In this document: piece by piece, positions 3,400 to 30,581 of the stretch
Layout: each line of letters opens with the position of its first letter
Position numbering within the stretch: position 1 is the first letter of the stretch
Assembly (NCBI GenBank): GCA_010909165.1
Contig: MU008188.1
Location: 496,001-560,000 of the forward strand
Reading direction: 5' to 3'
From: Anthoceros angustus
Lineage: Eukaryota > Plantae > Anthocerotophyta
Length of the DNA: 64,000 nt
Program-made: the position numbers and the translations under genes
The notes under the pieces: model-generated
Databases searched by the model: none
Told to the model about the DNA's origin: nothing
The model's input: the letters and a program-made list of their open reading frames with translations, nothing else

Positions 3400-6300
3400 A
3401 AAAAAGAGAAGGGAAGAGGCTAGCTGTACAGGCCGCCACATCACCGGCATATGTCGCAACCCGTCGTGTGCATTTTGCCATTGCAGAAGAATGTAGGGAT
3501 GATGAAGGTTCGATTTGTTCCCTTCAGATTGGTAGTGATGATGCTCGTTGTGAAAATCCATATTGTGAAAATCCATATAAGGAAAGCGGTCACACATGTC
3601 ATGGGAGCGACTCCTATGCGCTGCTGCTTGAAGGCCTTCAAAAGAGTGTATTGCCTTGGGCACAGGAGGTATGAGGAGCTAAAGAGCAGAGTCATTCTGG
3701 AATCACCTTGGGATGGATTCGGACCAAACCCGAAGGCACAATCTACTTATCGCTTGATGCCATTTTCTTGGATGGACAATGCTTTTACGTTTATGGCCGA
3801 GCGGCTTCCTAATTTGGAAGTTTTCAATCTACCCGACACTACAAAGTTGGAAATATGGCGTTGTACAAGCGTCGGTCAAGCTCTACGCATTCTATGAAGT
3901 ATCCATGGTTCTTAAAAGTGTGGAGAAGCAACTTCCCAAGAGTAAAATCCGAAGTCCAACAGATTTTCAACATGCTCGCTTTGTGCAGTGAAGAGCACTA
4001 TAAGGAATACAAAGCACAAGCAAGATCAAGGTAAATTGCACCAATGTGTCCTCCATGTGCTTGTTCCTCTTGTTGAATGCCACTATCATCATGCACGGAT
4101 GTTCCTCTTGTGTCTCTTCATAATGGATGCATGTCTTGCATGTGCAATACTTACCATGGATTGGGTTTCCCAAAAAGCGCTTCCAGGGCGCCGGTGGCCG
4201 CGCCTCAGCGATAAAGCCCCTCTCGGATGAGGCGCGGCCGGCCGGCGCTGAACTCCTGATGATGATTGACCCCTCCAAATCATCATGAGCGAAGGGGAAG
4301 GCGCCGGCCGGCGCCCCCACTCTCGTGCATGAATGATTGGTAGCGGCGAAAAAAGCTTTTGTATAGGTTGGATGGTTCTCTGTCGGGTGATGGAGATGGG
4401 GGTCTATTTTATTGCTGATTATGATGTTTTGTAGGCACGAGAAATTTAGTTGCCTTGGAAGCACATCGTGCGGCTCCACCGAGGCAATGAAAATGGCTAA
4501 ACAGGAGCAAGAGCTATGTGGAGCCACATAAGTATATCTGCTATCAATTGATGGAATGGACCAAAAAGACAGAGATACCTCATCTTCTCCGGTAGAAAAC
4601 CTAGAGAGTGTCGTATTCGATCCACGTGGTTGGGTGCATGATTCACAACTATACGCTTAAAAGCTAGAGCCTATTTGCATTATGCGAATTTGCGGAGCAG
4701 CGAATCTTCGATCACCATTATTCGGGCGTTATACATAATTACGAGGGTGTCTGCCAAGAGTTTTGTATTTGCGGTTGGACAACACATGCGGGAGAATAAG
4801 AACCAGCTTTTGCTATCGAACATGCTTGTTGATATGGGTACTTTTGAAAAGTGAAAGTGGGATTCCTTTTGGTCGGACATACTCATGATCAAATCGACGG
4901 ATGTTTTCTTGCTTCTCCAAAAGCTTGAAACATAAAGAAGCTCACGCTTCCGCATTGTCGAGATCTTGATGCAAGCGTACACTCCAACACCGAGGTCAAG
5001 GTATTGGTAGTGGCGACTTCGGTCATATGTGTGGCCCATTACACAAGGCCGAGAGGACTCGATTATGGGCGGCGAAAGATTGAACAACCTATCGTTCCGG
5101 CCGGTTTAAAATAACACGTGAAGAGAAAGCGGACCGTGGGTTTGTGATGTTAAGGAGCAAGCAATACTCGACCTCGCCTCGATTGGGAAGCGAAGGGGTT
5201 TGGAGTTTTGAAATTTGTGCCTTGGACACTATAATTGCGCCCTTGATGCGGTCGAGGATAAAAAGGAAGCCAGATATTATCTCCAAGCTGCGTTGCTCAT
5301 CTAAAGGGCGGTCTTGGAACTTAGGCCTTATGTGACATCAAGGAGTTTTATGGTGGGAAGCTTTACGGGTGGACCAGAGGAGATTCTTATTGTGTGGAAA
5401 ACAACATTGGCCTTGTGCTACACAAAACCTTGGAGGTGGTACTCGGATCGAAGTGGATGCAGTAACCTCTGCATGTTCGGATGAAGCACTCCTGGAGGAG
5501 GCATTCTTGAGGAGCTCCCACAGATATGTATTTGGGAGCATACCAAAACCAGGAGGCAACAACAAGAAATGTCACGGTTGAATGGTGATATCGCGAGAAA
5601 GCGGGAATGTTAGTTGCGGTTCCAGCGGACACAGACGCAAAATAGACCCTTTTGGATTGGGAAGGTGACCGTGTTAAACTACATGCACCAGCCTCACTTC
5701 CTTGTTCATTGGTACAGGCCGAACACAGATGCGTATGAAGGAGGAGTCGTGGAAGAATATTTAATCGGAGGGATGGCAGCAGCGGGAGAAGGGGCGAAGG
5801 CTATCCATCGAAAGAATATCCAACAAGTTTTTGTTCACCAAGCGGTCATCCTCTATTATGGGTTCACTTGACTAGCGGAAACATTTATGCGTTGTGGATA
5901 AGAAGGCCATAAGATAAGTTAATTGAATTGCGAGGCTTTATTCAACCGGTGAGTCAAAGTGCAACCGAGGGCGTGAAGATGATGGTCATGATCAAGCGAA
6001 GATGATGGCGTGGAGTCGGTAAGAGTAGAAACACTCGAATGTTGGGTCATCTTGACGGGCAATTGATGGTGAGGTTATCGTCAAGCTCCATTCACAGTAG
6101 TTTGAGTGCACATTTCTGCGGTGCAAATTTCGAATAGTGTCGCCCATGATAGGATTTTGGTTGTGGCTATCCTCGTGAAGTTGTAGACTTGACATAGTTA
6201 ATATCTTCCAATTTTCAAGAGTTTTCCATTACATTCGGAAGGACATGTGGGGAGTGTGGCCATAGGGCGCGGCATTCGGCATAATGTAAGGCATACGTTG

Positions 6301-6866
6301 GAGGTGGCATGTTGTTCCTCATGCGTCATGTCGGGAACTAGTTTCGCACACTTTTTAAGTTCATCGATTGCGGCGTGAGCATGTGAATATATTTTGCCAC
6401 AATTGAGGGTCGGAAGCCATCCCCCACCCCAATCCTAAAGTCTTTTGTAAACAAATCCCACTAAGGCACCCCTCTCCGCCATTCGCAAGGATCGTCACAT
6501 GCGGAGAAGGGCCGGGCGTCCTTCCTCTCCTGCTGCTTGCCCGGCGGGTCATGTCATCAAAGTTCATCACCGTTCTTTTTGGATTTCTTTTTTTGTTGAG
6601 CGAAAAGGCGTGATTCTGCGGCAATGGCCCTTGTCATGGGTCTTAAATGTGCCCCAAATGAGGTTAACTCTTACACCATAACCCTTCGCGGGCATGAAAT
6701 GGATCTTAAATCACTGGTTCATACGAATTGTCACCCTTCTTTTCTGCCTTAAATTGACCCATACCCCAAAAACCACGAGTTCAATACCCATGTGAAACCC
6801 CTTCAGGAGATATATGTCACAAAACCCTCTTCGTGAACATTCACCCCCTTCGAAAGATATCATGTT
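3400..6866 (+). mobile_element. Degenerate Sola-like DDD transposase element with right terminus at 6866
   Basis: Frameshifted motifs: WRSNFPRVKIRSPTDFQ-CxxC (~3920-3990), SIDGMDQ (4544-4565), LPRVLYLRLDNTC-ENKNQ (4751-4806), KVGFLLVGHTHDQID-MFSCFSK (~4850-4922), PHFLVHWYRP (~5690). Probable intron ~4031-4434. Terminal 23-mer cccccttcgaaagatatcatgtt (6844-6866) matches the nested element's TIR at 19/23. Left end not found. Confidence 0.75.
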
Positions 6867-10536: not shown

Positions 10537-11231
10537 GGGCTGGAGAGCGACTTGAGGCTACAGATGACCAATTTTCCGATGACTAATCACTCATATTTCG
10601 ACACCAACAATATAATTCGCCTACTCTCGCAGCCGCCAACGCTCCCTCTGCATCCTCCTACCAATTGAAGTGTAGTTGTAAGGTTGGGAGTTGTTGGTTG
10701 CGACCCATGAAGAAGGGTGCAAGTAGAGGAGGACCTCATAATTGTGGCGCTGAGAACAGCTCCATCAGCTTTTTTTATGAGTTAATTATAAATTAAAAAC
10801 TATAATTCACCCTTAAGAAGCCAAAACTCCCTTCAGCGTTATGGGGTTAATCTTGGCCTACCTACTGAACAACGAGTGCTCAAGGAAAAGCCGGGTGTGA
10901 TTAGGTACTAGGTATCCTTGAATGAAACTTAGCTGAATATAACTTGCACCTGGGTCATATGTTCCACGACCGGTTGCTACGTGTAAGGCCAACGAACGAG
11001 ATGTGTACACTTCGGCGTATTTCTATCCCGTTCATTGGAGGCGTAGAAGGTCTGAAGTTTGGAAGGTGGGGAGCGGTGAGCAAGGTGTGTTTGGCAGAAG
11101 GGCGTGGTGCCATACGTTAGACGCTGCTGGGCAAAAGCAGGTTCAGGTACCAATGGCGTCATCGTTCAGTTTGTGGCGTGGTGGCGGCCATCGCTGTCTC
11201 CTCGTCTAGCCACGGGCCACAGCACTCTCCC

Positions 11232-14200
11232 ATGTCTGTCCGTATGCCGGAGCACACGAGCTTATGGCTGGCATCGGCTTCTCTGCCCGGCGTCCCTCCC
11301 GTCTGCCCTCTCCCTAGGTATCAAGCTGCAGCCGCTCGGCGTTCCAGGCAATTCTCCCATAACGCTCCTGCTACATTCACTTGCTTGTATCCGGCATGGA
11401 ATCGGACTGTGTCCTCCTCGCTCGCCCGGCGGAACCTTCCTTCTCTGCGGACGACAGGTGGTGCCAGCAGACCGGCGCGGACGCCACTTCTCCTCCTCTC
11501 TTATTGCGCGTTCTCGGATTCCCGGGGGACGTGGAAAATTTCTAGGATATCCTCCCACGGCAGAATTCACCATGGCCACACTCACACGGACGAGGGAGCA
11601 GGTGGGCATCACGACCAGCATGACGGCCATGAAGCGCGCGAAGGTGCTGAGAACTGTTGTGCCCATGAGCACGAGCATGAGCATGAGCATGAGCATGGGC
11701 ACGGGCAGGGGCAGGGGAATGAGCATGGCCATGGGAATGGGCACCATGGGCATTCGCACTCCCACCACACAGGTCATTCGCATGAGACCACGCGATTGAA
11801 TTCGATGCAACAGGCTCTGCAGAAGCTGGCGCAAGTGCTGTGGATCACTAAGGTTGCTGATGTCTTGCGGGAGAATCTCTCTGTCTGCTTAATTTCCTTG
11901 GCTCTGCTGCTCGTGGGAGCAGCCGTGCCGCTGGTGTGGCGCAATCCGCTCGCCACCACTCTGCAGACTGCGCTTGCGGTGGTGGCATTTCCTTTGACCG
12001 CGGTACCGTCTCTCTCTCTTGGTTAAATCACGCTCGCATTCGCCTCTTCTCTTTCGATTAAAATCGTATTGGATGGAGGAGGAAATTGGTATCTCTCGCC
12101 CATGACTATAAGTGTGTCAGGCAATGGCAAGCTCCCTCCGAGCACTGGTGGCCTGCTTTCTCAGTAATTTGTTTTTTGGAACTTCATTTTCACACAGGTG
12201 TCAGGGGTATTGGACTCGACAATTGCCATCGCTGGCGGAAAAATTGACATCCATGTTCTCATGGCACTCGCATCAGTTGCCTCTGTGTTCATGGGGAACA
12301 TCTGGGAGGGTGGCCTGCTTTTGACAATGTTCAGCCTGTCCCATCTCGGTATTTCGCAAGACGCATCGCTGTTGTGGTCGTATGGGTCTCTGAGTCCGGT
12401 TTGAGGTACAGTAGGAAGCTGTGTTGCGTCATGATCGGCATTCATGCAGCAAAACACAAGATCTTTTTCCTTGGTGTTACGGGATCGTGAGACGTCGAGG
12501 TTTTGTGCCATGTTGCCACTGCTCTGTGATAGGTTCATGCTTTTCAGTGTAGAGGATGGTTAAGTCCATTCAATCGATTTCTTGTGTGTTGTTTGATCTT
12601 CTTAAGTTTGAACCTGCAGTGGAAGAAGGCTTTACCAGGCGAGCATTAGGCGACGTGAAGGCGTTAAGGGACAGCAATCCAGAGTCTGCTCTTGTCCTGG
12701 ACGACTTTGATAACTTATCTTGGGCAGCTCTATCGACTGCAGCTTACAAGTCTTTGCCAGTTACTCGGGTGGAGGCTGGATCGTATCTTCTGGTGAAGGC
12801 GGGTGAGGTATGCACACTCCAGTGTCATATGAGACTGCTGCCACCATTGATATAGCTGTACTCCATGGAAGTACTTCCGGACCAAGTTAAATTGTTCATG
12901 CGCAAAATGGCAATGCTGGAGATGTGGAAATGAATCCAAACGTGAATACTTCTGTGCTTAAGACCTGTAGCTCTCACACCGCAGAAATGCAAGGTGCTTT
13001 CTCAGTGGGTTTCTTGCTTTCCTTGAGAACAAGAGTTAGAGCCTCGACAATACTCAGAGTGAAGCATTTTATCAGAGATATATGGACACGTCAGTCTTTT
13101 GCAAAGTTGTTTGTTTCAGCATTTCTGACGTTCTGCTCTTTGGTCTCAGACAGTACCTGTAGATGGGGAGGTAGCTATGGGGCATTCCATGATAACGGTA
13201 GAACATCTTACTGGTGAAGTGTACCCTCTGGAGAAGAAAATAGGTGATTTGGTTCCTGGAGGAGCCAGAAACTTGGACGGCATGATGGTAGTGAAGGTTA
13301 GCTTGTCTGTTGTCAAAGACTATGGCAAGTACAGTGCAACACGTTTGGAGAACGTTATTATTAATAATTAATTTCTTTGTATGTACTAACAGGCTACCAA
13401 ATCATGGAATGATTCCACTGTTGCAAGGATTATGAAAATTACAGAAGATGCCCAGCTGAACCGCCCTGTTTTGCAAAGATGGCTGGATCAGTTCGGGGAG
13501 CAATATAGCAAGGTGGTAATTGCACTGTCTGTTGTGCTTGCTGTTTTGGGCCCAGTCATCTTCAAGTGGCCCTTATTGGGTTCATCAGGTCAGCAATGAC
13601 ATGCTTGCCTCAGTAGTTTGGTTAATGGCCTTTGCTCTCTGCGGGCGTTCTCTCTTTTGTCTTGGTGGGCGAGAACTGAGATTTTGTGTGCATGCGCCAG
13701 GGGTACGGGGCTCAATCTACAGAGGGCTGGCTTTGATGGTTTCAGCTTCTCCATGTGCGCTAGCCGTTGCTCCACTTGCCTATGCAACTGCCATCAGTGC
13801 TTGTGCAAACAAGGTCCAGTAACATGCTCTCTTCCACACTTTGTAGTTTTGACCAGAAGTGGCTCTGAGATGCTGTGAGGTAACTATCATGGAGCCACAT
13901 TCAAGTTTCTCTATCATTGGCCACACAAAGATTGAGGATTCTTGAAGCTTGGAAAGTCCTCCTTTCAGTGAACGAAAGGATTCTTCTTGCAGTAGTGGGT
14001 AGAATCAGTCCTCCTATTGTTCACCATATGTGTTTCATTGCAGGGTATCCTTCTGAGAGGTGGTGAAGTCCTAGATTCTGTGAGTGCATGTGACACGATT
14101 GCATTTGACAAAACAGGTACCCTTACCACTGGTGAGCTTGAGTGCAAGGCAATTGAACCTCTCCATGGCCATCTGAACCAAGGCCAGAGTGGTACACCGG

Positions 14201-16281
14201 ATGGCATTTGTTGCAATCCCAGCTGTGTTGCAGAAGCTCTTGCTGTTGCGGCAGCTCTGGAAAGGGGTGCCACTCACCCTATTGCTCAGTAAGCTCCAGC
14301 TTTGCTTAAATGGTTTTCCAGTAAAGTGAACGTACCTGGGAGTGACCTTCAAAGGTGTCTGTCATTCCAAAACCTTGATCACTATTTCCATGACCATCTT
14401 ACAGGGCAGTATTGGAGTACAGCGAGGGGAAAAAGTTGCCTCCTTTTGTTGTTCAGAACTTTGAATCATTTCCGGGCAAAGGATTGGCTGCAGATATCGC
14501 ACCAGTAGAGGTATACATTCCAGATTGCTTGGTTAGCTTATTTTTAACCGAGTCAAACAAGTTCATAAATTTTTCACGTCATAGATCTCTGAAATGCATA
14601 TTGACCGGTCAAGTTAACTTTACACATTTTCCCGAGATGGCTACGCAATTGACTGAGATGCTCAGGTTCTAGCTATGACTGTAATTCATTCCTACTGCTT
14701 TAATCTTTGAGTTGAGTCTTGTGAATGTGTTTTCTGTTTCAAGCGGTTCCTTGATTTTTTATAGTCAGGTGATGGGGCTTCGCACAGAGCATATCTGGGA
14801 TCTCTGGAATTCGTTGGATCGTCATCTGGCTTTGATACAAGCTCTCGGCGGCTTGAGGACTCACTAGAAGCATCGCCTTTTAGCAGCGAACTTGTGCGGG
14901 CAGCTCTCTCTGTTAATAGCAAGGTCTTGGCCTAAATCAGAAGTGGGGTTTTCAAGTGCTTTTATCTGGTCTGTACACTATTAACACGTGCCTTGCTGTG
15001 AGATGCAGATCACCATCTTTCACTTGGAAGACAAGTTGCGGGCACATAGTGCTGATGTGATCTCATCCTTAAGAAGGCACGAGGGCCTGAGGTTGATGAT
15101 GTTGACGGGGGATCATCTGGCTAGTGCTCAAAGGGTTGCTAGAGCAGTTGGTATTGATGAAGTCTACTCAGGTCTGAAGCCTGAAGAAAAGCTGCAAAAA
15201 GCAAGAAGTTTCTCTGGTAAGAGTGCCCTGGCTGTGCAGATTTGTATCTGTTGAAGACTGAATGCAAAACTGGTTTTGATGGAGGGAGGGATGGTTTTGG
15301 TGCTCCTCTGATGATTCTAGTGGCCTGCTATCTGACATTCATATGTTACATTGTTGAGCAATGACAGTGTGTTGTGATTTTTCTCCAATCTTCTCTTGTT
15401 GGGGATTCTGCACGCAGCCTGCCTGTGATGACAACTGGTGTGTCTGACTCGAGTGCTATGCAGCCCGGGATGGCTCAGGAGGCCTCATTATGGTTGGCGA
15501 CGGAATCAATGATGCACCAGCCTTAGCAGCTGCGACAGTTGGAGTTGTGCTTGCACAGCGTGCAAGTGCAACAGCTGTGGCTGTTGCAGATGTGCTCCTC
15601 CTCCAGGACAATATTGACGGAGTGCCATTTCTGATTGCAAAAGCTCATCAGACTACAGCAGTGGTATGCTCTATTTTGAAGTCACATCTTATCTGATTTG
15701 GCTGGCAATCTGTCTCGTAGACTAAGCGCTTTATCCTCGCCATTGCTTGTCATGCAGGTCAAACAAAGTGTGTTTCTTGCACTTTTTTCGATCCTGGTTG
15801 CATCTCTACCTTCAGTCTTGGGAATGCTGCCACTTTGGCTCACGGTTTGTTCCTTTGGTCCCCAGGACTCCGTGTGTTATGTACTTGTTTTAAGTGCATC
15901 TGCTTTTCGTGTTCAGATGTGAACGTTCATCGTTCTGAATCTGTACAAGATACATGAATCATGAAGCCAGAATTCGATGTTACGGGGTGGCTCTTTGTGC
16001 TAGACAGCCTAGATACCACCTCCCACCTCTTTATATGTCTTTGAAACTTATGTAACTTGAGTCTGTTCTACGCTTGACAGGTGTTGTTGCACGAAGGCGG
16101 TACCTTACTGGTGTGCCTGAATTCAGCCCGTCCTTTGAGGAGTCCAAGTGACGCGTGGGTTTTATCCCGTTCAGGCAAGGTATCTAAATTCCGTAGTCGA
16201 ACTGCTCACTTATGGAAACAGCTGGTAAAACGGCTGATGAGCAGGTCAAGCAGGCCTAACTTGCAATCTGGTCCTGCATGA
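11232..16281 (+). CDS. HMA1: Chloroplast heavy-metal P1B-4 ATPase (HMA1 orthologue), multi-exon
   Basis: Exon 1 (first in-frame ATG 11232, to 12002) encodes a transit-peptide-like region and a His-rich tract. Later GT-AG exons give IHVLMALASVASVFMGN, EHLTGE, GARNLDG, MVSASPCALAVAPLAYATAIS (SPC motif), DKTGTLT, LMMLTGDH, GDGINDAPALAAATVG and LLHEGGTLLVCLNS; stop at 16281. Closely parallels AtHMA1 as I recall it. Confidence 0.97.
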
Positions 16282-17402
16282 TCTTCACAACTTGGCCGAT
16301 CTGGGTGGGCCGCTCCTAGATAGACGGCATAGAGTTAAGCGTCTCCAGATTGGCTCTTAAACAACGTGGGTGTGGTTGCCTAATGTGCGGAGCATCATGA
16401 CAAGTATTGTATCGGCGATGAGTCACGAAGATCTTGGTGACGCAACTTACGTGGGGCGGTGCGGCTGTCTGAGTTATTTTTTCTTCTTATCCGCACCGAC
16501 AACGGACGAGGTGTCCCATCCGCTATGAATCAGAATCTGCATTATTCCAGTACTTATAAGCTTCGCAGATCCCGATCTCTCTTACGTGGATTCTCATTTC
16601 TAATGTATAAAATATGTATTAATATGTAGAATATAATCTATGCCCTGCAGGAGGCCGTGACCCTTCAAAGTCCGCGAGTCTCTATACCGTTGTTTACTGG
16701 GTAGGCAAAAACGCATTTAGCTTATGCTAAGGGGGTATTCGGGACGACATCAAAATTTGCGCCCATAGAAATGGGAGCCGCTCACTAAAATTCGTCGGGG
16801 GTTTAATGCTTGGTTGCCTTGATGTGGCGGGGCCTACCATCTGTCTCTCTCATCCGTGACTTGCGACCCGGAGCGCGAGCCGAGAGCCGGGTGAGTGGCT
16901 TTCCCATTGATACCCGATGGCCATTAAGGCAAATACGGTCTGCACACCCGTGCGGACGCGCAACCCGATGTACCGCGCAACCCGATGAACCGGCTTCATA
17001 TCGACATACACGACATAGCAGCAACATCAGTTTGTGGTTCCCGTCGCATACTCGGGTTTTTGCACTCGTTCTCTGTACCTGCATTTCCATACCCGGCTTT
17101 CCATACCCGGGATGAAAGAATTCCAAACCCGTCGGTTTGAAGTCCAGGTTTCAAATCAGGTTTTCAAAGCTATGCACTTCTCATCGCGGTGAACCGATCT
17201 GAAAAGAAAGCGGTGCAGATGCGACAAGACGCCTAATATGCTGCCCGGTGCAGATGCGGAGACCAGGCCTAAAACCATGTTCATGAGAGACCATCTGGAT
17301 TCACCGCGCATGTAGATCAGTACCTCGCAGTGAGTGCAAAAACTCGCATCTCACGTCCTCTTGTTAGTTTTGAGAGACTATTCCTTCACACGATACTGTT
17401 CC

Positions 17403-17614
17403 TTCAATTGCAGGACTCATTTGTGTTCATCTCCTTGTTGATGTTCCTCTTGTGACAGGTGAAGAAGAGGACCTCGAATGACAACACTTACAGATCTGGC
17501 TCACATGTTTCAATTGCAGGACTCATTTGTGTTCATCTCCTTGTTGATGTTCCTCTTGTGACAGGTGAAGAAGAGGACCTCGAATGACAACACTTACAGA
17601 TCTGGCTCACATGT
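17403..17614 (+). repeat. Perfect 106-bp tandem duplication containing splice-acceptor-like sites
   Basis: ttcaattgcaggactcatttgtg...gtgacaggtgaagaagagg...ggctcacatgt occurs twice (17403-17508 and 17509-17614). Confidence 0.9.
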
Positions 17615-18225
17615 GATGCACACGCTTAACAAATTATCTCTCTTCTTAGGCTATGACCCTCTGAATGCGAACGCCAGCCTACCTTGTTGAACATGGGCAT
17701 TTTAACAATCGCCAGTCCGGCCGTGAATCAGAGGACCTGCAATTGGCACAAGGTACAAGCATCATTACTCTTCATGTGGATTTTCTGAACTTTGGAAGGG
17801 ACGAGGGTAACTAGTTTTGCATGTCGACATCGATCCTTCTCTGACTGCGCCGATTTTCCAGCAGCATTCACGGAAGGGTCGCTTTGAACAAAGTGAAAGC
17901 CGCGACATGGCAAGAATAATGTCTCGGGAGAAGGTGGCTGGGTCCCGAAGGTGCGGTATGCGGCAGCGGTGCCGATCGATGATCGGTGGTAGGAATGGGC
18001 ACCTCTTACAGCAGGCTTTAGTGCTTAAGTTTCCTCACGGGTTTGGAGGAGTTCTTGTACATAGTGCATGCTGGCATTGAGCATTCTCACCTTCTAAAAC
18101 CAAGAGTGGATTCGACCTTCTAAGACGAAAAGCGAATTGACCCGATCAAACCGAGTGCTATCTCGCTATCTCCTCTCAAGACCCTACAAAAGTAGATTGG
18201 TCACTTCTAAAACCAAAAGCCTATT

Positions 18226-21090
18226 TCAGCTCATCAATCCACCCTTTATCAACCGCCTATGTTCCACTTCACCGTCTTTTCTTCTTACACACAACTTCCT
18301 CCAAACCAACATATCGTTCATTGCTCGTGCCTCATTCTCAGCAAAAGTTTCCAACACTTGTTTCCGTTGAGGTTCTTCGTCTGCCTGTGCCACTAACTGT
18401 CTCAGCTTCTGTTGAGTTTGCTCCATAATGCAGGCTATCCCAAAAGCTAAATCTGAACGCTCAAATGCGGTATCACATACTTCAGCACATGCCGTTTTAA
18501 TAAAATCCAACCGTTTTTCTTTTGCCATCTCCAATTTTGTCTTACATATTGGTGCCACCAAGGTTACTAGGCAACACAATGTGTGGAGCTTCTTGATTCG
18601 CATCCAAAAGCCATAGCCAAGTTGTTGGTATCACTACTTTCAACATACGCTCCATTTGTTCTTCCATTTTGCCTAGTCACTCCATCCTTGTGTATGCCAA
18701 GGAGTTGTTGAACTTTCACCACATGCTTGCAGATGAAACCTTTGTTCCCCATTGGACATGAGCATGTAGCCCAAGGAGAGTAAACATGTTCAATCACATA
18801 CCACAAGTTAGGGGTCGATGAAGACAAACAATGTGCAACAACATTTTCGGCATGCGGTAAAATAACTGAGCTAATAGGAATAGTTTCTGCACCCTTCATA
18901 GCGGTTTCCTCCAAAGCCTCCAGCTTCTTGTTATGCCTGTATCCCCCTTCTTTTGTGAAGTGCTGGTACCAATAATGTCGGGCAACCACATTCACTAATT
19001 GGTGTAGTAACCAGTCTAGTTTACGGCCAGGCAAACTTGACTTGCTAAATGCTGCACGTTCTTTTATAAATCTATGGAATCCTTCCACAGCTGAAGTTGT
19101 ATGTTGCCCTGCATGAGGCAACATTCTAGCATTACACAACCACATATCTATAGTCTCTCCCATTGGACCTTCATATATCTCACAAAGTCTCCTTCACTTG
19201 TTCCCCACTTGTCATAAAAATTGTGTAGCATACTTCTTCCTATGGAAACACACTGAAGATGTGCTTGCCTCGTGACATACATAATATCCCTAGCTCGCCC
19301 ATATTGAAATTCGATTACTTTGTGAGTGCACTTTCTTCAATAAATTCGTCTCCACGCTTTCCGCACATGCCACAAGCATAATAATATAGGCATATTATGA
19401 TTCCACATCGAGCGAATAGCGTAAATCTACGCGATCATCAACAAGGAATGAACTAGGTGTCCAATCCTTGTTGATCTTTTCAACCTTCTTCCAGAACTGA
19501 AAGCCACGACAAGTGACTCAAGAGTAGCATCTTTTGTAATAGCCCATGCGAACACCGCTCAAGTAATGGTCAAAACCCATCACGTGAATAAGTGGTAGCG
19601 ATACACTGCTCAACCCAAAAGTTGCATCCATAGCTAGCACATTACCATTCCCATAAAGCAACATGCAATTTAACATAAAAGGAGTTTGAATACCCAAAGC
19701 GAAAGGTTGATTCTCGCTTGATTGGTGGAAGACTATAGACGATTTTGCTCCAACCACGTGACACCGATGTGGCATCATCCGGCTAGCTTCCATTCACCAA
19801 CTTCAACTTGTGTAAGATATTGAGAACATCATATCTTTGCATATAATCATCTCTTACTAGTTTATATACCGTCGATTGTTGATTCGAGCATACAATGCAT
19901 CTTGATGCCGACGCATTATTTCATCACAGAACTTTGCAATATAGGCAATGCCCGATCCAATCCTTCTTTTCTTGTGAAAGCCATGCGCTCGACATCACGG
20001 GTAAGCCTTCGCACCTGTGCCCATGACATATAGCATTTGAAAGGTCGATGCCTATGTTCAAAAGACCAATCTCAAGAACCTTAGGCCACGGAGAAGTTTC
20101 TTCACCCTAAAATTTGCTTGGCAACCATGCTTGACACTCTCTCCACGGAGGACCTTACATTTAGCTGTATTAGCACCACGTGACACTCCCACCTCCTTTT
20201 GGCGAAAGTCTTCCGGGCCGTAAGAACACCAATACCTGCAAGCCAGCCTCACAATGTTAATGCCTCCCTAAGTAATAAAACAATTTACATACTTCAAACC
20301 TTCTTACCTAACATATGATGCAGCTGTATGCACTGTCGGTACTGCAGGGCGAGGTAAACTCCCCGGCCCCTTAGAATCCTTCTTGTAGAAGTTCGTAGGA
20401 TGGGAACTTATAGCACTCATTCCCCCAATAAAGTCTCCCACTCTAGAAAAGAGTATGTGAGCCACCTTCACATGTTTTTGCTGCCCTGGTGCCCTAGAAT
20501 GGTCATATTGAGAAGAAACCCGCTTTAGGTCAAGATGCCTATGTTCAAAAGACCAATCTCAAGAACCTTAGGCCACGGAGAAGTTTCTTCACCCTAAAAT
20601 TTGCTTGGCAACCATGCTTGACACTCTCTCCACGGAGGACCTTACATTTAGTATTAGCACCACGTGACACTCCCACCTCCTTTTGGCGAAAGTCTTCCGG
20701 CCGTAAGAACACCAATACCGCAAGCCACCTCACAATGTTAATGCCTCCTAAGTAATAAAACAATTTACATACTTCAAACCTTCTTACCTAACATATGATG
20801 CAGTATGCCTTTATCGATCAGTAGGTAAACTCCCCCTTAGAATCCTTCTTGTAGAAGTTCATAGGATGGGAACTTATAGCACTCATTCCCCCAATAAAGT
20901 CTCCCACTTTAGAAAAGAGTATGTGAGCCACCTTCACATGATTTTGCTACCCTGGTGCCCTAGAATGGTCATATTGAGAAGAAACCCAGTTTAGGTCAGT
21001 ATGGTTAAATAACCGTAATTTAGGAAGCTGCACCACAAAAGGTGTGTTAGTTGGTAACTCTTCTAAGTTAATACAAGAACTCAAATCCAT
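18226..21090 (-). pseudogene. MULE/SWIM transposase gene A (disrupted, with an internal ~480-bp tandem duplication)
   Basis: ATG at 21090 (MDLSSCINLEELP..DLNWV..VAHILFSKVGDFIGG), YWCSYGPED..KHGCQANF, GNGNVLAMDATFG, HAGQHTTSAVEGFH, SWIM CSCPMGNKGFICKH. Several frameshifts and stops. Confidence 0.85.
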
Positions 21091-21160
21091 ATTATTATTA
21101 TCCGTAAATCACATTCCCCTATCCCAAAGAGAAAAACCCTAACCCTAACCCTAATCTCAA

Positions 21161-24100
21161 CCTTTAACCAAAATCCCTATCCCTAATCACAAGAGCGCTT
21201 GAAAGCAAAGATTGAACATGCCGCTCTAAACTCGCATCTCACGCTATGCAAATGACGGAGTTCACATACCATAAGCTTGTGAGCGTGGTGCACTTTGGAG
21301 CCTTAAACAAGTATTATTAGTAACGTAAGGGTAGGGACGAGCGGCTTTCTCATGTCCCGTGTTGGTGGTATGTAGCACAGGCCAAAACTTTTGGCCACCG
21401 GTTCGGATTATGCATGACTCACCATAGCATGGTGATGGGCAAGCACATACATAGGTACATGTCGTGGCCGTGGAGGGCCGTCATGACACACGTACCTTAA
21501 TGGCCATCTGCATCCATTTGCAAGCGGGTGAGTGCACCATACACATGGAAACACGTGACCGTTGCGAACACATGGGCACATACATGAGAACAGGGACGAC
21601 ACCGTGAGTGGCGAAGAATCCAAAGATGTAGAGCACGTGGGAGTGAGGCCTGGTATACGAGATGCACGTTATTATACATATCTTTTGCTGGACATAACCG
21701 AATTTTGGTACAGGGTAATCAAATTGAAGCTTGTCTGAAGGGCGACAGGATGAGCTATTGCTCAAAGCCAAAAATATAGAGCATTCGAGGTTTAGGCCTG
21801 GTAACACAGATGCTCATTTTTGTTCATAACTTATGCTAGACACAACTAAAATGTAATACAGGGCAATTAAATTGAAGCTTGTTCAGAGGGCTACAGAATG
21901 AGCTATAGCTCATTCCGTGTAAACATATGTGGAACGCGTACTGAGAGTTTGAAATTCAGAGAGCACAAATTGTTCAGCGGGCAATTTTGACGAACACCAA
22001 TATCCAAGTTCGCATACAGATAGCTGAACATGATGAGTTTGAAACTGGCTTTTCGATGACCTATCTTACGAAATTTATGGCCAAGTAAAGCATGAACTAG
22101 CCACAAATCTCATCCTTCCCTCTCTTCAAGATAACTACTTTCAGCACCTTGGTGCAACACCTCTAGCATCTTTGGCTTCTGCCGGCGGGTTGCAGGCTTC
22201 CAAGTAGTCATCTCCACAATACATTTTTTCCTCTTCAAAGAATCTCCAAAGCCATTGTCCAATTTGAGTAAATGGCCTTGAAATGTGGACACTACACCAT
22301 TGACACATTTTCGTGCCTGCAACTGTTTAACTTGGAGAAGCAACATAGAAGCTGCTGCATGAGTATGCTGGAGCAAGGAAGCATCAGCATGCACCATTCC
22401 CCACACTTCTTTACATATATTCTCCAAGCTCTGGTATGATGCAACGGCCTTCACTTGTGGCTTTACGTTGCCAAATGGCAGTGCTGTTGGCAATGATTCA
22501 GTGTCTTCCTGAGTTGTGAAAATAGGCGTGTCCGCCTCGTGCACCGCCTGTTCACAAGGCATATGTACTGGTCCAACAGAATGCGGAGAGACATGGACAT
22601 GTCCTCTTCTAGCCATAGCATAACTAGCTGTGTGTGGATACCAATTCCCCTTTGAGGTATAATATCTTAGCTTGGTGCTTGCAAAAGAAACCTTGAGTGC
22701 CTCTGGGACAATTAGAAGTCCAATCTGCACTTACAATGAAGATGGTATAGATCAACGATCGTGCAACTCCTCACAAAAGCTAGTCCATCAATTGTGGTTG
22801 GTAATGTGACAGAGTCGGAATGGATTGGGAACCCAAGATTGCATTGTCCACGATTGCTGCTTCCCTTGCATTGTACCTGAATCCATGCTCCTTTGTGAAA
22901 TGCTTATACCAGTAGATTTTGCTTACTGTTTCCACGAGAGTGTGGAGCAACCAATCCAACCATCTTCCTCGCAGCCTAACAAAATCATGGCACAAAGCAA
23001 AGACTTCAAAACCCATGCAAGGCTTCGATAGCAGAGTTACAATCTTGGCTGCGTGCCTCATAGTTCGACACCCTTTAACCAAAATCCCTATCCCTAATCA
23101 CAAGAGCGCTTGAAAACAAAGATTGAACATGCCGCTCTAAACTCGCATCTCATGCTATGCAAATGACGGGAGTTCACATACCATAAGCTTGTGAGCCAGG
23201 ATGCACTTGGAGCCTTAAACAAGTATTATTAGTAATGTGTAAGTGGGTAGGGACGAGCGGTTTTCTCATGTCCCGTGTTGGTGGTACGTAGCGCATGGGC
23301 GTCAAAACTTTTGGCCACCGGTTCGGATTATGCATGACTCACCATAGCATGGTGATGGGCAAACACATACATAGGTACATGTCGTGGCCGTGGAGGGCCG
23401 TGCGGACACACGTGCCGGCCTTAATGGCCATCGGGTATCCATTTGCAAGCGGGTGAGTGCACCATACACATGGAAACACGTGACCGTTGCGAACACATGG
23501 GCACATACATGAGAACAGGGACGCATACCGTGTGAGTGGCGAAGAATCCAAAGATGTAGAGCACGTGGGAGTGAGGCCTGGTATACGAGATGCACGTTAT
23601 TATACATATCTTTTGCTGGACATAACCGAATTTTGGTACAGGGTAATCAAATTGAAGCTTGTCTGAAGGGCGACAGGATGAGCTATTGCTCAAAGCCAAA
23701 AATATAGAGCATTCGAGGTTTAGGCCTGGTAACACAGATGCTCATTTTTGTTCATAACTTATGCTAGACACAACTAAAATGTAATACAGGGCAATTAAAT
23801 TGAAGCTTGTTCAGAGGGCTACAGAATGAGCTATAGCTCATTCCGTGTAAACATATGTGGAACACGTCGAGAGTTTGAAATTCAGAGCACAAATTGTTCA
23901 GCGGGCAATTTTTGAACACCAATATCCAAGTTCGCATACAGATAGCTGAACATGATGAGTTTGAAACTGGCTTCGATGACCTATCTTACGAAATTTATAG
24001 CCAAGTAAAGCATGAACTAGCCACAAATCTCATCCTTCCTCTCTTCAAGATAACTACTTTCAGCACCTTGGTGCAACACCTCTAGCATCTTTGGCTTCGC

Positions 24101-24992
24101 GGGTTGCAGCTTCCAAGTAGTCATCTCCATTTTTCCTCTTCAAAGAATCTCCAAAGCCATTGTCCAATTTGAGTAAATGGCCTTGAAATGTGGACACTAC
24201 ACCATTGACACATTTTCGTGCAACTGTTTAACTTGGAGAAGCAACATAGAAGCTGCTGCATGAGTATGCTGGAGCAAGGAAGCATCAGCATGCACCATTC
24301 CCCACACTTCTTTCCATATATTCTCCAAGCTCTGGTATGAAGCAACGGCCTTCACTTGTGGCTTTACGTTGCCAAATGGCAGTGCTGGCAATGATTCAGT
24401 GTCTTCCTGAGTTGTGAAAATAGGCGTGTCCGCCTCGTGCACCGCCTGTTCACAAGGCATATGTACTGGTCCAACAGAATGCGGAGAGACATGGACATGT
24501 CCTCTTCTAGCCATAGTAACTAGCTGTGTGTGGATACCAATTCCCCTTTGAGGTATAATATCTTAGCTTGCTGCTTGCAAAAGAAACCTTGAGTGCCTCT
24601 GGGACAATTACAGCAAGTCCAATCTGCACTTACAGTGAAGATGGTATAGATCAACTTCTGATCAGTGCAACTCCTCACAAAAGCTAGTCCATCAATTGTG
24701 GTTGGTAATGTGACAGCCGAGTCGGGAATGGATTGGGAACCCAAGATTGCATTGTCCACGATTGCTGCTTCCCTTGCATTGTACTTGAATCCATGCTCCT
24801 TTGTGAAATGCTTATACCAGTAGATTTTGCTTACTGTTTCCACGAGAGTGTGGAGCAACCAATCCAACCGTCTTCCTCGCAGCCTAACAAAATCATGGCA
24901 CATAGCAAAGACTTCAAAAACCCATGCAAGGCTTCGATAGCAGAGTTACAATCTTGGCCTGCGTGCCTCATAGTTCTGACACCCTTTAACCA
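21161..24992. repeat. 1,911-bp tandem duplication bounded by the 10-bp microhomology cctttaacca
   Basis: cctttaacca at 21161, 23072 and 24983. 21161-23071 aligns with 23072-24982, including the 3' part of transposase C. Confidence 0.9.
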
Positions 24993-26644
24993 TAAGGGAA
25001 GCACACTGTGCCATTGTTTCTTGAAATACTCAATGAAACTCGGAGCGCTGTCTCCAAAATCTACATACACTTGTTGTAGCATTTTGTGGGCCTCATCTTT
25101 AGTTTGCCACCGTCGGGATAGGTACATAATGTGACCAAGGCGCTGGAAGATTGCAACCCGAACTTCCCAGTTCCAGACCTTCAATAACAAATGTCGTAAC
25201 CAGCACTTTCTGACATGCCACAAGCATAACAACACTGGAACTGTCACGCCCCATACATTGTGAATGGCTGCAATTTCTGCAGCTGCATCGTCTACCAGAA
25301 AGGCACTTGGTTGCCATTCCTGGCAGTGCCTACCAATATGGTCCTTGAAAGCTTGCAACCAAGAGTGAATATCTACTGTCCCACTATCTGTAACAATCCA
25401 GGCAACAGGCATTCCGTTATAGTAACTATCAAACACCAAAAGTGTGTACAAGTGAAACTTGTATTTGTTGGTCCCGAACGTGGCGTCCATGGATATGACA
25501 TTCCCATTCCCAAACTGCAGAATCATGGAACGCTGGAAATCAGTTTGCAAGCCAATCACTAAGGGGGAGGAAACAGAATGATACCAGACAAGGTCCTTGT
25601 GAGCCTCTATCCACAAACCAACACTAATCTCATCGTTGGGGTGATACTGATAGAACCCTGGAAACAATTGAGAGGCAATGTTGTTAATGTCGTGCGGCTG
25701 TAAAAAATCATCGCGACAAGGTTCATAATCACTAGCTTGTGCTTTCAATTCTACTTGCTCCACATGCTCGAGGTATATCTGCCTCTTTGTTACACCAGCA
25801 AATAGAGGCTGTCTCATAGCAGCACGGATGTCCTCACTTAAACGGGCAGCAAACCTTGAGCGAGGGTCTGCAGTATACTGAAGTCCGTGGCAGATTTGTC
25901 CAGATTGGTCTACATGTTCAAATGAATCACGAAACACAACTGCTAGTTGTGGCGGATAGCAAGTCGCTTCACATCAAAGTGGTACTCGCAACCATGTTTG
26001 ATACTCTGACCTCTCAAGATCTTGGCTTTGCGTTTTCCTACACCGCTTGAAGCCTGCTTTTGTCGCATTATCACGAAGATCGCCTTTCCCAAATGCACAC
26101 CAGTATTTCGTGTGGCACAAATAAGCCCAAACATTAGTTTTACGGCTGCTGTTGGAGGCAACTTGCTTCTTATCCGTCTCCTTCCAAAAGTATGTGGGGA
26201 ACTGCACATTCTTGCCTTAATACGATAATTTTTGAAGGGGGGATATACTGACCCCCTTCGGCCGAGACAGCACCCCCTTGTCACGAAGAACACCTTACCT
26301 AGAACAGCATATGTGCCCTACTTTGATAATGCACACACCTTTCTCGAGGTCATATCTTTGATAAAAGATGCACTTTCAAGTCTACACCCGAGAACTGGAG
26401 CATGAGGGTGTGGGCCCGCTTATGCTTTAGTAGAATGCATAGAGGGCTGCCATTTTCATATGTTTATTACAACCGAAAACTTTTACTTTCAAGTGGTGGA
26501 ACACAATGAAAACAATCTGTACTAGCGGAGTCTCATTTAAGTGGTCGTGAGAACATTGCAACAAACAATCAAGGAGGAAGTGGTCATCAAGATCGACAAT
26601 AGCCATTCAAGAGTGCGGCTGGCGACTCATCCATGCCTTGCGCC

Positions 26645-28858
26645 AACCGAGTCAAGTACCACCGCCATATTCGAGGCGGTCCATATCCTCCGCCTCGGTT
26701 GTCGCTCTCCATTGCTTGCTCGCCTTCAATAGTATCATTCTTGGGCCCCGACGGTGTCGATCGCCACACAAAGATCTAGGGTCTCACCTCATCCAAAAGG
26801 TCGCCATGTGGTCTTCAACCTTCCGCACTCAATGCAACCACTTGGGCTTTAAGGCAATGCCAACGTCCTTAAAATGAACAAAGTTAGTTGCCCATGCGCC
26901 CATGCAAGCATCCTTAAAATCAACAAAATTGAATTGTTGAGGAGGCACGAGGTTTGAACACAAACCTATTCATTACTACACTTATTTCCCAAACACTAGA
27001 CCAACAGTCCATGGTTGAAATAATTCTTGAGGCGCTAAATATTTATTTTCTGGAAGCAGGTAGAGGAGGCGCCGGCCGGCGCCCATGGGCAAGGCATGGC
27101 GTGTTGGTGGGGGCGGCCGGCCCATGGGCGGCGGCCGGCGCGCCATGGGCGGTGTGCTAGGAGGGCGCTGGCCGGCCGGCGCCCATGGTGTGCTAGGGGA
27201 GGCGCCGGCCGCCCATGTGGTGTGTTAGGGGAGGCGCCGGCCGGCGCCCATGGGCGGTGTGCTAGGGGAGGCGCCGGCCGCGCCCATGGGTGGTGTGTTA
27301 GGGGCGCCGGCGGCCGGCGCCCATGGGCAAGGCATGGCGTGTTGGGGAGGCGCCGGCGCGCCCTTAGCACCATCCTACGGTGCATACGGTGAAGCTAGGG
27401 GGACAAGAAGGAACGGCAGTATCCTATCACCGATGGAAGGTGTGGCCCATTTGCGTGAAGGGTTAAAAGATTTGCATCCATAGGTGACGCTGAAGAGTAT
27501 AAGTGGTGGGAAGCCTTTGGACCGGAAGGAGATTGCTATCATTGTGGAGAATAACATTGGGCTAGTGCTACGTCCTTGGAAGTGGTTTTCACGTGCGAAG
27601 TGGATCATACTGACCACTTCAAGTGCGGATGAAGCTTTGCTAGATGAGGCATTATTGAGGGACCTCCACGTGATATGTATTTGGGGCATATCAAAATGCG
27701 GAAGGCAACTGGAAATGGCACGGATGAATGGGGACATAACAAAACCGAGTCAAGTACCACCGCCATATTCGAGGCGGTCCATATCCTCCGCCTCGTTGTC
27801 GCTCTCCTCCATTGCTTGCTCGCCTTCAATAGTATCATTCTTGACGGTGTCGATCGCCACAAAGATCTAGGGTCTCACGACCCTCATCCAAAAGGTCGCC
27901 AATGTGGTCTTCAACCTTCCGCACTCAATGCAACCACTTGGGCTTTAAGGCAATGCCAACGTCCTTAAAATGAACAAAGTTAGTTGCCCATGCGCCCATG
28001 CAAGCATCCTTAAAATCAACAAAATTGAACTGAGGAGGCACGAGGTTTGAACACAAACCTATTCATTACTACACTTATTTCCCAAACACTAGACCAACAA
28101 TCCATGGTTGAAATAATTCTTGAGGCGCTAAATATTTATTTTCATGAGGTGGGGAGGGCGCTGGCCGGCGCCCATGGGCAAGGCATGGCGTGTTGGGGGG
28201 CCGGCCCGGCCCATGGGCAAGGCATGGCGTGTTAGGGGAGGCGCCGGCCGCCCATGGGCAGTGTGCTAGGGGAGGCGCCGGCCGCCCATGGTGGTGTGCT
28301 AGGGAGGCCGGCCGGCCCATGGGCGGTGTGCTAGGGAGGCGCCGGCCGGCCCATGGGCAAGGCATGGCGTGTTGGTGGGGGCGCCGGCCGGCCCATGGGT
28401 GGTGGTGTGCTAGGGAGGCGCCGCCGGCCGGCGCCCATGGGCGGTGTGCTAGGGAGGCGCCCGGCGGCGCCTCCCTTAGCACCATCCTACGGTGCATACG
28501 GGTGAAGCTAGGGGGACAAGAAGGAACGGCAGTATCCTATCACCGATGGAAGGTGTGGCCCATTTGCGAAGGGTTAAAAGATTTGCATCCATAGGTGATC
28601 AAGAGTATAAGTGGTGGGAAGCCTTGGACCGGAAGGAGATTGCTATCATTGTGGAGAATAACATTGGGCTAGTGCTACAGCCTTGGAAGTGGTTTTCACG
28701 CGTAAGTGGATCATACTGACCACTTCAAGTGCGGATGAAGCTTTGCTAGATGAGGCATTATTGAGGGACCTCCCACGTGATATGTATTTGGGGCATATCA
28801 AAATGCGGAAGGCAAGCTGGGAAATGGCACGGATGAATGGGGACATAACGGAACCGAG
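26645..28858. repeat. ~1.1-kb tandem duplication inside the nested element (aaccgag microhomology)
   Basis: aaccgag at 26645, 27743 and 28852; the two units align. Confidence 0.88.
27068..27363. repeat. GC-rich array of palindromic motifs (GGCGCCGGCCGGCGCC and CCCATGGG); second array ~28156-28473
   Basis: Repeated ggcgccggccggcgcccatggg-type units separated by tgtgctagggagg or caaggcatggcgtgttgg spacers. Confidence 0.9.
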
Positions 28859-30581
28859 AGGGATGTTTACGGCGGTGCCGTGCAATACGGACATGCATAA
28901 CAGGCCATTACGGATTGGGAGGTCATTGACGTGAAGCTAAACGCACCACGACCTCACTTTCTTATCCACTAGTATCGGACCGAGCACATAGATGCGTATG
29001 AAGGAGATATGTGCAGAACATAGTCCGCCAGAGTGGTAACCCATCCGTCCAATGCCGAGGAAAAAGGGAATAAGATCCATTACCTAAAAACATACAGAGG
29101 TATTTGTGAATGAAACATATCCCAGACATGGGTTTGTGTTGAACGACAAAACATCCGTATGTGGACAAAAAGCGATAAGGGATAAGCTCATGAGTTGCGT
29201 GGCTTCATACAACTGCGAGTGAAAGTGTCATCAAGATAGTGATGACAATGGAGGAGAAGTCGGACCAAGTGATGACGATGGATTGAACTCGGGATGAGTG
29301 AAACCGAAATCTGCTTTTTCCGGGTCCCGAGTTAATGTTGTAAGTCCGGTCGATGTTTCGTGTTAGGAAATACCGTCTGTGGCTTTTGTGGTGTCATAAC
29401 AAAACCACATTTCCATCCCAAACCGAAGTTTACTGCTCGCCCGGCAGAACGGCCTTCCTCACCGCTCCTACTTTGCATCATTCCCTAGGTTCGAGTTTCA
29501 TACCACCATTCGACACAAACATTGCCGGATGGAAAGTAGTAACTTTCCGGGTGACACCTTTTTGGAGCTGTTTTCCGCAATGCCTTCAAAACGCTGTTTT
29601 AGGGCCCATCAAAAACCCCCTTCAGAGATTATTTGCGGAAAACCCCCTTCGAGATTATTCACCCCCTTCAAAAATTATCGTGTTCCTTCTCCTAACACCA
29701 AGTCAGACACCCTGTTCCATGGAATAATGGCAAATCTAGAGATAGCGGGCACACAATCCTTAGAAGCAACTTGATACCGTCTTGCTATAACAGTGGGTGA
29801 AAACTTGAGATGTTGCGTGTTGAACAAGCCACCTGGCGGCTCTTGCACCTCCCAACCGTAGGGAAGATCTTCAATCTCCATCTTAGTTGCCATTTCAAGT
29901 CACAATTCGGTGTTCAGAACACGGGCTGCACGGAGGTATTGCTTAATCGAGTTCAGTGTGAAGTGAACCCGCCAAAAATGATGCTTACTTTCTATTTCAA
30001 ATGGAAACGTGTTTTAGGGTTTGTTTCGCCTCTGGTTATGTATGACATGCATGCCATGCGCAAGCAGACATGGTCATAGCATGACGTCATGCTCATGACA
30101 TGAGGCATGACATGAGCCTCTTGGCGCTTAAGACCGGCAGGCCGTGCCGGTGGCAACGGAGAGGAGAGAGACTGAGTGGTGGGCCCCACTAGATCAAGGC
30201 AACCTCGCATTAAACCCCCGACGAACTATAGTGACCGGGGAAATGGGATGCCATCGGGGTTCTGGATATACCCCACACACGTTTCGATCTTGGTATATTT
30301 CCATTGCTAGCTTGATGCTCAACAACAAAAGCAATGATATTTATGTCCACTAAGGGTAGCTGTCCTTTTTCGGCACATAAAAAAACTTAAAATTAAATTG
30401 GGTAGAGTCAAGTTAGAAAGTACCTAAACGAAGTGGGCCCTTCTAGTATTTAAGCCGACGTGAGAAAACTGATATTACACTGAAAACTTGAACTAGTTCT
30501 ACTGATTATTATCTATTAGTTGTACATCAAATAACATGCTAGCCTTGCTATAGATTTTCTGTCAGTTTAACGTCAAACGAC

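Follow-up and report, generated by a model that had tools for sequence, protein, structure and literature searches.

A stretch of 64,000 nucleotides from Anthoceros angustus (contig MU008188.1, positions 496,001 to 560,000; referred to as the window) contains, between its positions 16768 and 30248, a genuine Mutator-type transposon, or Mutator-like element (MULE). This 13.5-kb stretch is, however, a decayed composite of three nested transposons, and the two transposase genes that it carries on the minus strand, here called genes A and B, are pseudogenes. An earlier note, made from the letters of the same DNA alone, had described one element encoding transposases. Its bounded MULE stands, but not its unity or its coding capacity, as gene A lies in a separate element (MULE-A) nested within the outer one (MULE-B) and both genes are broken. 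The reading that we favour, taken as a whole, is a dead three-layer nest of DNA transposons in which genes A and B belong to a land-plant MULE lineage related to At1g60560 of Arabidopsis, and we give it a probability of about 85%. As a locus, this is an ordinary nest of dead transposons, and the interest lies in the link at the level of the family. The features of the nest are listed below, with TIR for terminal inverted repeat and TSD for target site duplication.

16768..16776, no strand: left 9-bp TSD GAAATGGGA of the outer MULE-B
16777..16854, plus strand: left TIR of MULE-B, 78 nt, 85% identical to the right TIR, multicopy
16889..16897, no strand: left 9-bp TSD GGGTGAGTG of the nested MULE-A
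16898..16930, plus strand: left TIR of MULE-A, 33 nt, 88%
18567..21033, minus strand: gene A, a pseudogene with ~20 frameshifts or stops
20042..20998, no strand: tandem duplication of ~490 bp inside gene A (20042-20532 against 20527-20998, 93%)
21158..24995, no strand: tandem duplication of 1.93 kb (21158-23084 against 23069-24995, 95% with gaps)
21495..21534, minus strand: duplicated twin of the MULE-A right TIR, with a small deletion, and of the TSD GGGTGAGTG (21526-21534)
23418..23450, minus strand: right TIR of MULE-A
23451..23459, no strand: right 9-bp TSD GGGTGAGTG of MULE-A
24121..26214, minus strand: main part of gene B, with zinc-finger N-terminal domain, MULE/RNaseH core, SWIM finger and C-terminal tail
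26215..26218 and 29685-29688, no strand: 4-bp TSD AAGG of the third element
26219..29684, no strand: third element, a nested non-coding TIR element of 3,466 bp with 24-nt TIRs (1 mismatch)
29689..29893, minus strand: 5' part of gene B, from the ATG at 29893 to the insertion point
30161..30239, minus strand: right TIR of MULE-B
30240..30248, no strand: right 9-bp TSD GAAATGGGA of MULE-B

The ends of MULE-B agree with what had been read from the sequence at the outset. The imperfect TIRs noted at 16777 and 30239 align over 78 nt at 85% identity (16778-16854 against 30161-30238), and the perfect 9-bp TSD is present on both sides, the two copies of GAAATGGGA abutting the outer TIR ends without a gap. 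A 9-bp match at fixed positions has a chance probability of ~4e-6. In the 64-kb window, a 19-nt core word of the outer TIR occurs only at the two element ends, where 0.01 occurrences would be expected by chance. The outer and the inner element both combine TIRs with a TSD of the length known for MULEs (8-11 bp, typically 9). Without its later additions MULE-B would measure ~3.4 kb and carry one transposase gene of ~770 codons. Contigs from one run of this species and from two related species were aligned to the left junction (15300-17800). In all three species, several contigs per run start precisely at 16776-16779, and others do so at 16898, each with different sequence outside; the contig depths add up to ~8 over the flank and to 40-190 within the element. 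Given these exact starts with unlike flanks, both types of end are boundaries of multicopy families that occur across the genus; the recurrence of the TIR elsewhere, which the earlier note had proposed as a check, is thus found in this species and in both relatives.

Gene A lies in a MULE of its own. MULE-A spans 16898-23450 and begins 112 nt inside the left end of MULE-B; its 33-nt end word is confined to its two ends, and a perfect GGGTGAGTG, made of MULE-B sequence, abuts both outer sides of the 33-nt inverted repeat. It is this inverted pair, together with the flanking 9-bp repeat, that identifies MULE-A as a separate element nested within MULE-B. The 33-nt unit at 16898 was also considered as a mere subterminal repeat of MULE-B, a reading that we rejected: the unit is missing from the right end of MULE-B, and it has both a 9-bp direct repeat and an inverted partner. 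In the left part of MULE-A, a unit of 106 nt is perfectly repeated in tandem (17403-17508, then 17509-17614), and next to this pair is a region (17043-17333) that is covered by a low-depth contig from a possibly-RNA run.

The two genes were traced by a frameshift-aware alignment of the DNA with relatives from ferns and angiosperms. The motifs first spotted in the translations (MDATF, LVDD, CLWH, SAIE or SAVE, and a SWIM finger) are indeed present, in two minus-strand gene copies, and the catalytic residues D (MDATF), D (VDD), C.WH and E align with those of animal and algal MULEs. In gene B, a 368-aa open stretch (24831-25937) matches the Pfam MULE domain PF10551 at 1e-11, above the curated cut-off, and PF21056 (ZSWIM1-3 RNaseH-like) at 2e-10. 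The frame of gene B shifts at least three times (near 26063, 25959 and 24901). In its SWIM finger, Gln replaces the last His. Gene A retains recognisable N-terminal zinc-finger motifs along with MDATF, LVDD, CLWH, SAVE and SWIM; its final 198 codons are open, and this 198-aa stretch (18567-19163) matches SWIM PF04434 at 2.6e-5. The two genes are 36% identical and differ greatly in decay. Neither contains an intact transposase open reading frame (ORF), and the copies in the window are probably no longer self-mobile.

Gene B is further broken by the third element, which splits it after ...LVLGEG. Conceptual removal of this element restores collinearity with the homologs: AIIPWNRVSDLVLGEG and KNVQFPTYF become contiguous only once the 3,466-bp insert has been taken out. 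Compared with Sola-type transposons, the third element presents the 4-bp TSD AAGG and the 24-nt TIRs, and it has no transposase inside; its TIR word was not found in the rest of the window, 3400-6866 included. Within it are a tandem duplication of ~1 kb and G+C-rich repeats of 36-37 nt (GGCGCCGGCCGGCGCCCATGGG...) at 27060-27360 and 28150-28480, which yield long spurious Pro/Ala/Gly/Arg-rich ORFs on both strands. The 1.93-kb tandem duplication listed above takes in the right end of MULE-A with the adjacent TSD, and also the 3' third of gene B; since it spans the A/B junction, it is later than the MULE-A insertion.

Sequence searches place the two genes in a family that extends to the angiosperms. 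Word-based searches led to Adiantum proteins of ~40% identity and, via these, to angiosperm proteins of ~700-800 aa annotated as "SWIM-type" or "zinc ion binding". With a Mangifera member as the query there were 624 matches, the 120 listed being angiosperm orthologs that are 75-89% identical, with Magnolia, Acorus and Nelumbo among them. An exhaustive phmmer search, run with the 368-aa stretch of gene B on 1.84 billion representatives, yielded 1,933 matches (37 below 1e-30), headed by an Adiantum protein (P0016, 42%); a representative of the At1g60560 clade (P0153) ranks fifth, with an E value of 1.2e-54. The other top matches are from Riccia, Cryptomeria, Amborella, Magnolia and Hevea, and lower ones include proteins with PF10551 and PF21056 from Mesostigma, ticks and insects. 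When aligned onto gene B with tblastn, the angiosperm members P0021 and P0029 score 9e-60 and 5e-57, respectively. The homology runs over essentially the full length and is closer than that to any other family in these searches, and the N-terminal motifs IPxxRV..F..GE, YWC.[FY]GP, GCxCHF.VK.L and HV...G..CHG are common to genes A and B and the angiosperm genes. Membership of the At1g60560-type family, as proposed in the earlier note, is supported by the clade representative at 1e-54, by shared N-terminal and core motifs, and by the name "like AT1G60560" that one member of the clade (P0112) bears in its source. Pfam detected no FAR1 (PF03101) or MuDR-type DNA-binding domain in the ORFs of the window or in 26 relatives, ten low-ranked phmmer matches included. 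The bland annotation of the angiosperm genes is explained by their falling below the Pfam cut-off for MULE, which leaves SWIM as the only domain detected. A search of solved structures gave no useful match.

Two of the more distant or unusual entries may be mentioned here. P0246, a protein of 1420 aa from an Ostreococcus-type alga in marine metagenomes, has a Ulp1 protease (PF02902) fused upstream of the MULE core, and recalls the plant MULEs that carry Ulp1. The Cryptomeria protein cluster (P0165) lists a 37-aa Pseudomonas phage protein, which is probably a clustering artefact.

The maximum likelihood tree (IQ-TREE, LG+G4, with ultrafast bootstrap and SH-aLRT supports) was built from 42 rows and 697 columns and rooted with Mesostigma and animal MULEs; ten rows of a quick tree that were partial, redundant or on very long branches were omitted (P0035, P0019, P0028, P0031, P0020, P0018, P0168, P0240, P0201 and P0246). 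Support for the land-plant family is 99/96. Within it, genes A and B pair as sisters (100/99) and fall into a group (85/97) that also holds ferns, Ceratodon and two Riccia proteins. Among the angiosperm proteins there are three clades, which together have full support (100/100): clade I, the At1g60560-type, of ~720 aa; clade II, of 800-1140 aa, annotated "zinc ion binding"; and clade III, of ~695 aa. That phrase, common to At4g13970 and the clade II member P0029, is the sole hint that At4g13970 belongs to the family, in clade II. The angiosperm clade, with an Amborella protein, is sister to multicopy copies from Taxus (97/95). The 48-row quick tree agrees on the A/B pair and on the three angiosperm clades, but places the angiosperms within the gymnosperm copies (Taxus, then Cryptomeria), where the IQ-TREE tree makes Taxus a plain sister group. 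The window genes do not fall inside the angiosperm host-gene clade of the IQ-TREE tree. As they group with ferns and bryophytes while the angiosperms are sister to Taxus, the lineage in the window is a cousin of the angiosperm genes and not their direct source.

The catalytic signature differs between the groups of the tree, as follows.

Transposon-like members (window, ferns, most Riccia, Taxus, Cryptomeria P0034): D1 (MDATFG), D2 (DD), CxxH (C.WH) and E all kept
Angiosperm clade I: D1 kept, with H in sampled monocots; D2 mostly kept (DN in Hibiscus); CxxH with H to R and often C to S; E kept
Angiosperm clade II: D1 kept; D2 kept among the rows listed; CxxH with H to R and often C to S; E kept
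Angiosperm clade III: D1 changed from D to H; D2 kept in Cannabis, among the rows listed; CxxH kept; E kept

Each angiosperm clade thus lacks either D1 or the histidine of CxxH (clades I and II have lost the His, clade III has lost D1), and the N-terminal C-C-H-H finger and the SWIM finger are conserved across all groups. Such a pattern of residues would fit domestication, with DNA binding retained and catalysis lost.

The genomic setting of the relatives also differs. In Adiantum nelumboides, the apparently intact protein P0007 (785 aa) is encoded within a 5.9-kb element (L002:9332-15260) that has 291-nt TIRs at 98% identity and a perfect 9-bp TSD, GTGCTATGC. In Taxus, 18 proteins more than 90% identical form a cluster spread over many chromosomes, and one identical protein is found on two of them. 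The neighbours of the Theobroma ortholog are ordinary host genes (ESCRT-II, Med26, DnaJ and Arf), with no inverted repeats around the locus, and the Nelumbo gene spans 11.9 kb. The earlier note had suggested that the element in the window would point to the mobile source of the angiosperm genes. Mobility of the family outside angiosperms is borne out by the Adiantum element and by the multicopy TIRs, but the part of source does not fall to the fern- and bryophyte-related lineage of the window. Elsewhere in A. nelumboides (L004:8616-22712), another protein, P0009, is encoded twice in a perfect palindrome of ~14 kb (100% identity), which may be an inverted duplication of very recent origin, or else an artefact of assembly.

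Plant MULEs of the MuDR/Jittery type with SWIM-finger transposases have been surveyed by Dupeyron et al. 2019 (PMC6446971). The elements in the window resemble these in their TIRs of tens to hundreds of nucleotides, 9-bp TSD, single ORF with a PF10551 DDE core, CxxH and C-terminal SWIM finger, as well as in insertion near a gene and in nesting. They differ in having no match to FAR1 (PF03101) or to a MuDR-type DNA-binding domain, in a core that also matches PF21056, in a family-specific N-terminal C-C-H-H finger (GCxCHF..VK..L ... HVD...CHG), and in belonging to a clade that spans bryophytes, ferns, gymnosperms and angiosperm host genes. With the angiosperm genes of the type of At1g60560 (annotated "SWIM zinc finger family protein"), to which At4g13970 is linked by its annotation phrase, they share near-full-length homology (N-terminal finger, core and SWIM finger), the same order of motifs, 30-35% identity and E values of 1e-54 to 1e-60, as measured through angiosperm orthologs. 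Whereas the At1g60560-type genes are intact, 75-89% conserved, TIR-less and short of one signature residue, the copies in the window lie in transposons, are broken and multicopy, and retain D, D, CxxH and E. The Adiantum L002 element is of the same family (34-38% to gene B) and has the same MULE architecture and TSD length; unlike the window elements, it is young and apparently intact, and its longer TIRs are unrelated in sequence to those of the window.

The broken transposase genes of the window belong to the same family as the conserved At1g60560-type genes, and the latter therefore look like domesticated transposases. Key plant regulators are known among domesticated transposases, FHY3/FAR1 and MUSTANG being examples. 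The angiosperm genes described here resemble FAR1/FHY3/FRS and MUSTANG in that a MULE transposase has been kept as conserved TIR-less host genes with altered catalytic residues, and differ from them in forming an apparently separate lineage whose angiosperm members are annotated only as SWIM or zinc-ion-binding proteins. We tentatively propose, at a little less than even odds, that the At1g60560-type genes and their two sister clades, one of which probably holds At4g13970, are hitherto unrecognised domesticated MULE transposases found throughout angiosperms and a counterpart to FAR1/FHY3 and MUSTANG. Their ancestor would be a MULE lineage that transposons still carry in ferns, gymnosperms and plants of bryophyte grade; their fixation, accompanied by loss of the CxxH His or of the first catalytic Asp, would predate the radiation of the angiosperms. 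The direction of this change, from transposon to host gene, is one that we infer. At1g60560 and At4g13970 do not appear in the tables and supplements of exapted transposable elements of Joly-Lopez 2017 (the search did not extend to Hoen & Bureau 2015 or to the supplements of Joly-Lopez 2016), and in the open literature they are mentioned in just two papers, both unrelated; the novelty of the domestication link is plausible but unproven.

A very conserved and uncharacterised angiosperm family, with three old paralog clades that range from Acorus and Magnolia to eudicots, is hereby tied to transposon-borne relatives, and a lost catalytic signature residue is identified for each host clade. Standard domain scans, which show SWIM only, have missed this transposase ancestry. 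It suggests the hypothesis that At1g60560 and At4g13970 are sequence-specific DNA-binding proteins derived from a MULE transposase, for which the apparently intact Adiantum element could serve in functional comparison.

Under the reading that we favour, the history of the locus may be reconstructed as follows, in an order that is conjectural except that the 1.93-kb duplication followed the MULE-A insertion. A compact MULE-B of ~3.4 kb would have inserted ~190 bp downstream of an expressed host gene, creating the TSD GAAATGGGA. The related and distinct MULE-A (~4.1-4.6 kb, with 33-nt TIRs) would then have inserted 112 nt inside the left end of MULE-B, creating the TSD GGGTGAGTG, its transposase gene decaying either before or after that insertion. 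A non-autonomous TIR element of 3.5 kb with a 4-bp TSD would have entered gene B, and the tandem duplication of 1.9 kb would have copied the A/B junction. The transposase lineage is envisaged as one with a zinc finger of C-C-H-H type at the N terminus, an RNaseH-like DDE core (PF10551/PF21056) that includes CxxH, and a SWIM finger. It would be mobile now, or have been so recently, in ferns, gymnosperms and the genus of this plant, and in angiosperms would survive only as three very conserved TIR-less clades of host genes, each minus one catalytic signature residue.

Several observations weigh against this account or narrow it. The comparison with At1g60560 rests on angiosperm orthologs, and Arabidopsis sequences, that of At4g13970 included, are not among them; likewise, the tree does not contain FAR1, MUSTANG or MuDR sequences. 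No empty-site allele was seen, the flank contigs of the relatives ending at ~16511-16598, short of the insertion point. The TIR of MULE-A is short, at 33 nt. The flanks of the Riccia genes P0030 and P0158 (L001 and L003) gave only simple repeats and no TIRs, which means that some members outside the seed plants may also be domesticated or dead. Finally, the frameshifts of gene B may in part be assembly errors, given that reads were mapped on 15300-17800 only.

This last point bears on an alternative in which the internal duplications and some of the frameshifts are artefacts of assembly, gene B is intact and MULE-B is autonomous. All three frameshifts of gene B affect a single base each, the frame being otherwise well conserved; the tandem duplicates share 93-95% identity, and read mapping did not reach the gene. 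Against this, the 3.5-kb insertion with its own TSD breaks the coding sequence regardless, the many substitutions and indels between the duplicates are not what collapsed or expanded assembly repeats would show, and the SWIM His has become Gln; we consider such an autonomous element very unlikely. Less improbable, although still unlikely, is a single 13.5-kb MULE that would have moved as one unit, with two diverged transposase paralogs in the same orientation as its native genes. The whole stretch does lie between a single pair of outer TIRs with a single perfect TSD, the tree joins genes A and B as sisters, and, as two TSDs give no order of events, the nest could have moved jointly after MULE-A had inserted. 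Gene A is nevertheless bracketed by its own 33-nt TIRs and by a perfect 9-bp TSD of MULE-B sequence, the end at 16898 is the boundary of an independent multicopy family in 3 species, the contig starts there already suggest that ends of this type stand by themselves elsewhere, and A and B, at only 36% identity, are very unequally decayed.

A reading without any transposon, in which a cluster of domesticated host SWIM genes is flanked by fortuitous inverted repeats, could appeal to the host genes that represent the family in angiosperms and to the Riccia loci without TIRs. It has next to no chance of being correct: two independent perfect 9-bp TSDs stand at TIR ends, the TIRs are multicopy with variable flanks and their multicopy boundaries refute it, frameshifts run throughout both genes, and conceptual translation gives catalytic residues of the kind found in transposons.

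The left neighbour of the nest is a spliced and expressed host gene on the plus strand (15463-16589), for which a contig of RNA type defines exons at 15463-15662, 15757-15843 and 16080-16589 with GT..AG introns. As the exons end at 16589, MULE-B lies ~190 bp beyond the 3' end of this gene. Its orthologs in the two related species are ~94-95% identical, and a second form of contig at this gene skips 15352-16278. Further to the left (11100-14300, plus strand), His-rich and Met-rich ORFs are followed by transmembrane-like sequence, resembling the N-terminal part of a heavy-metal P-type ATPase gene. The window also encodes an intronless MAP kinase.

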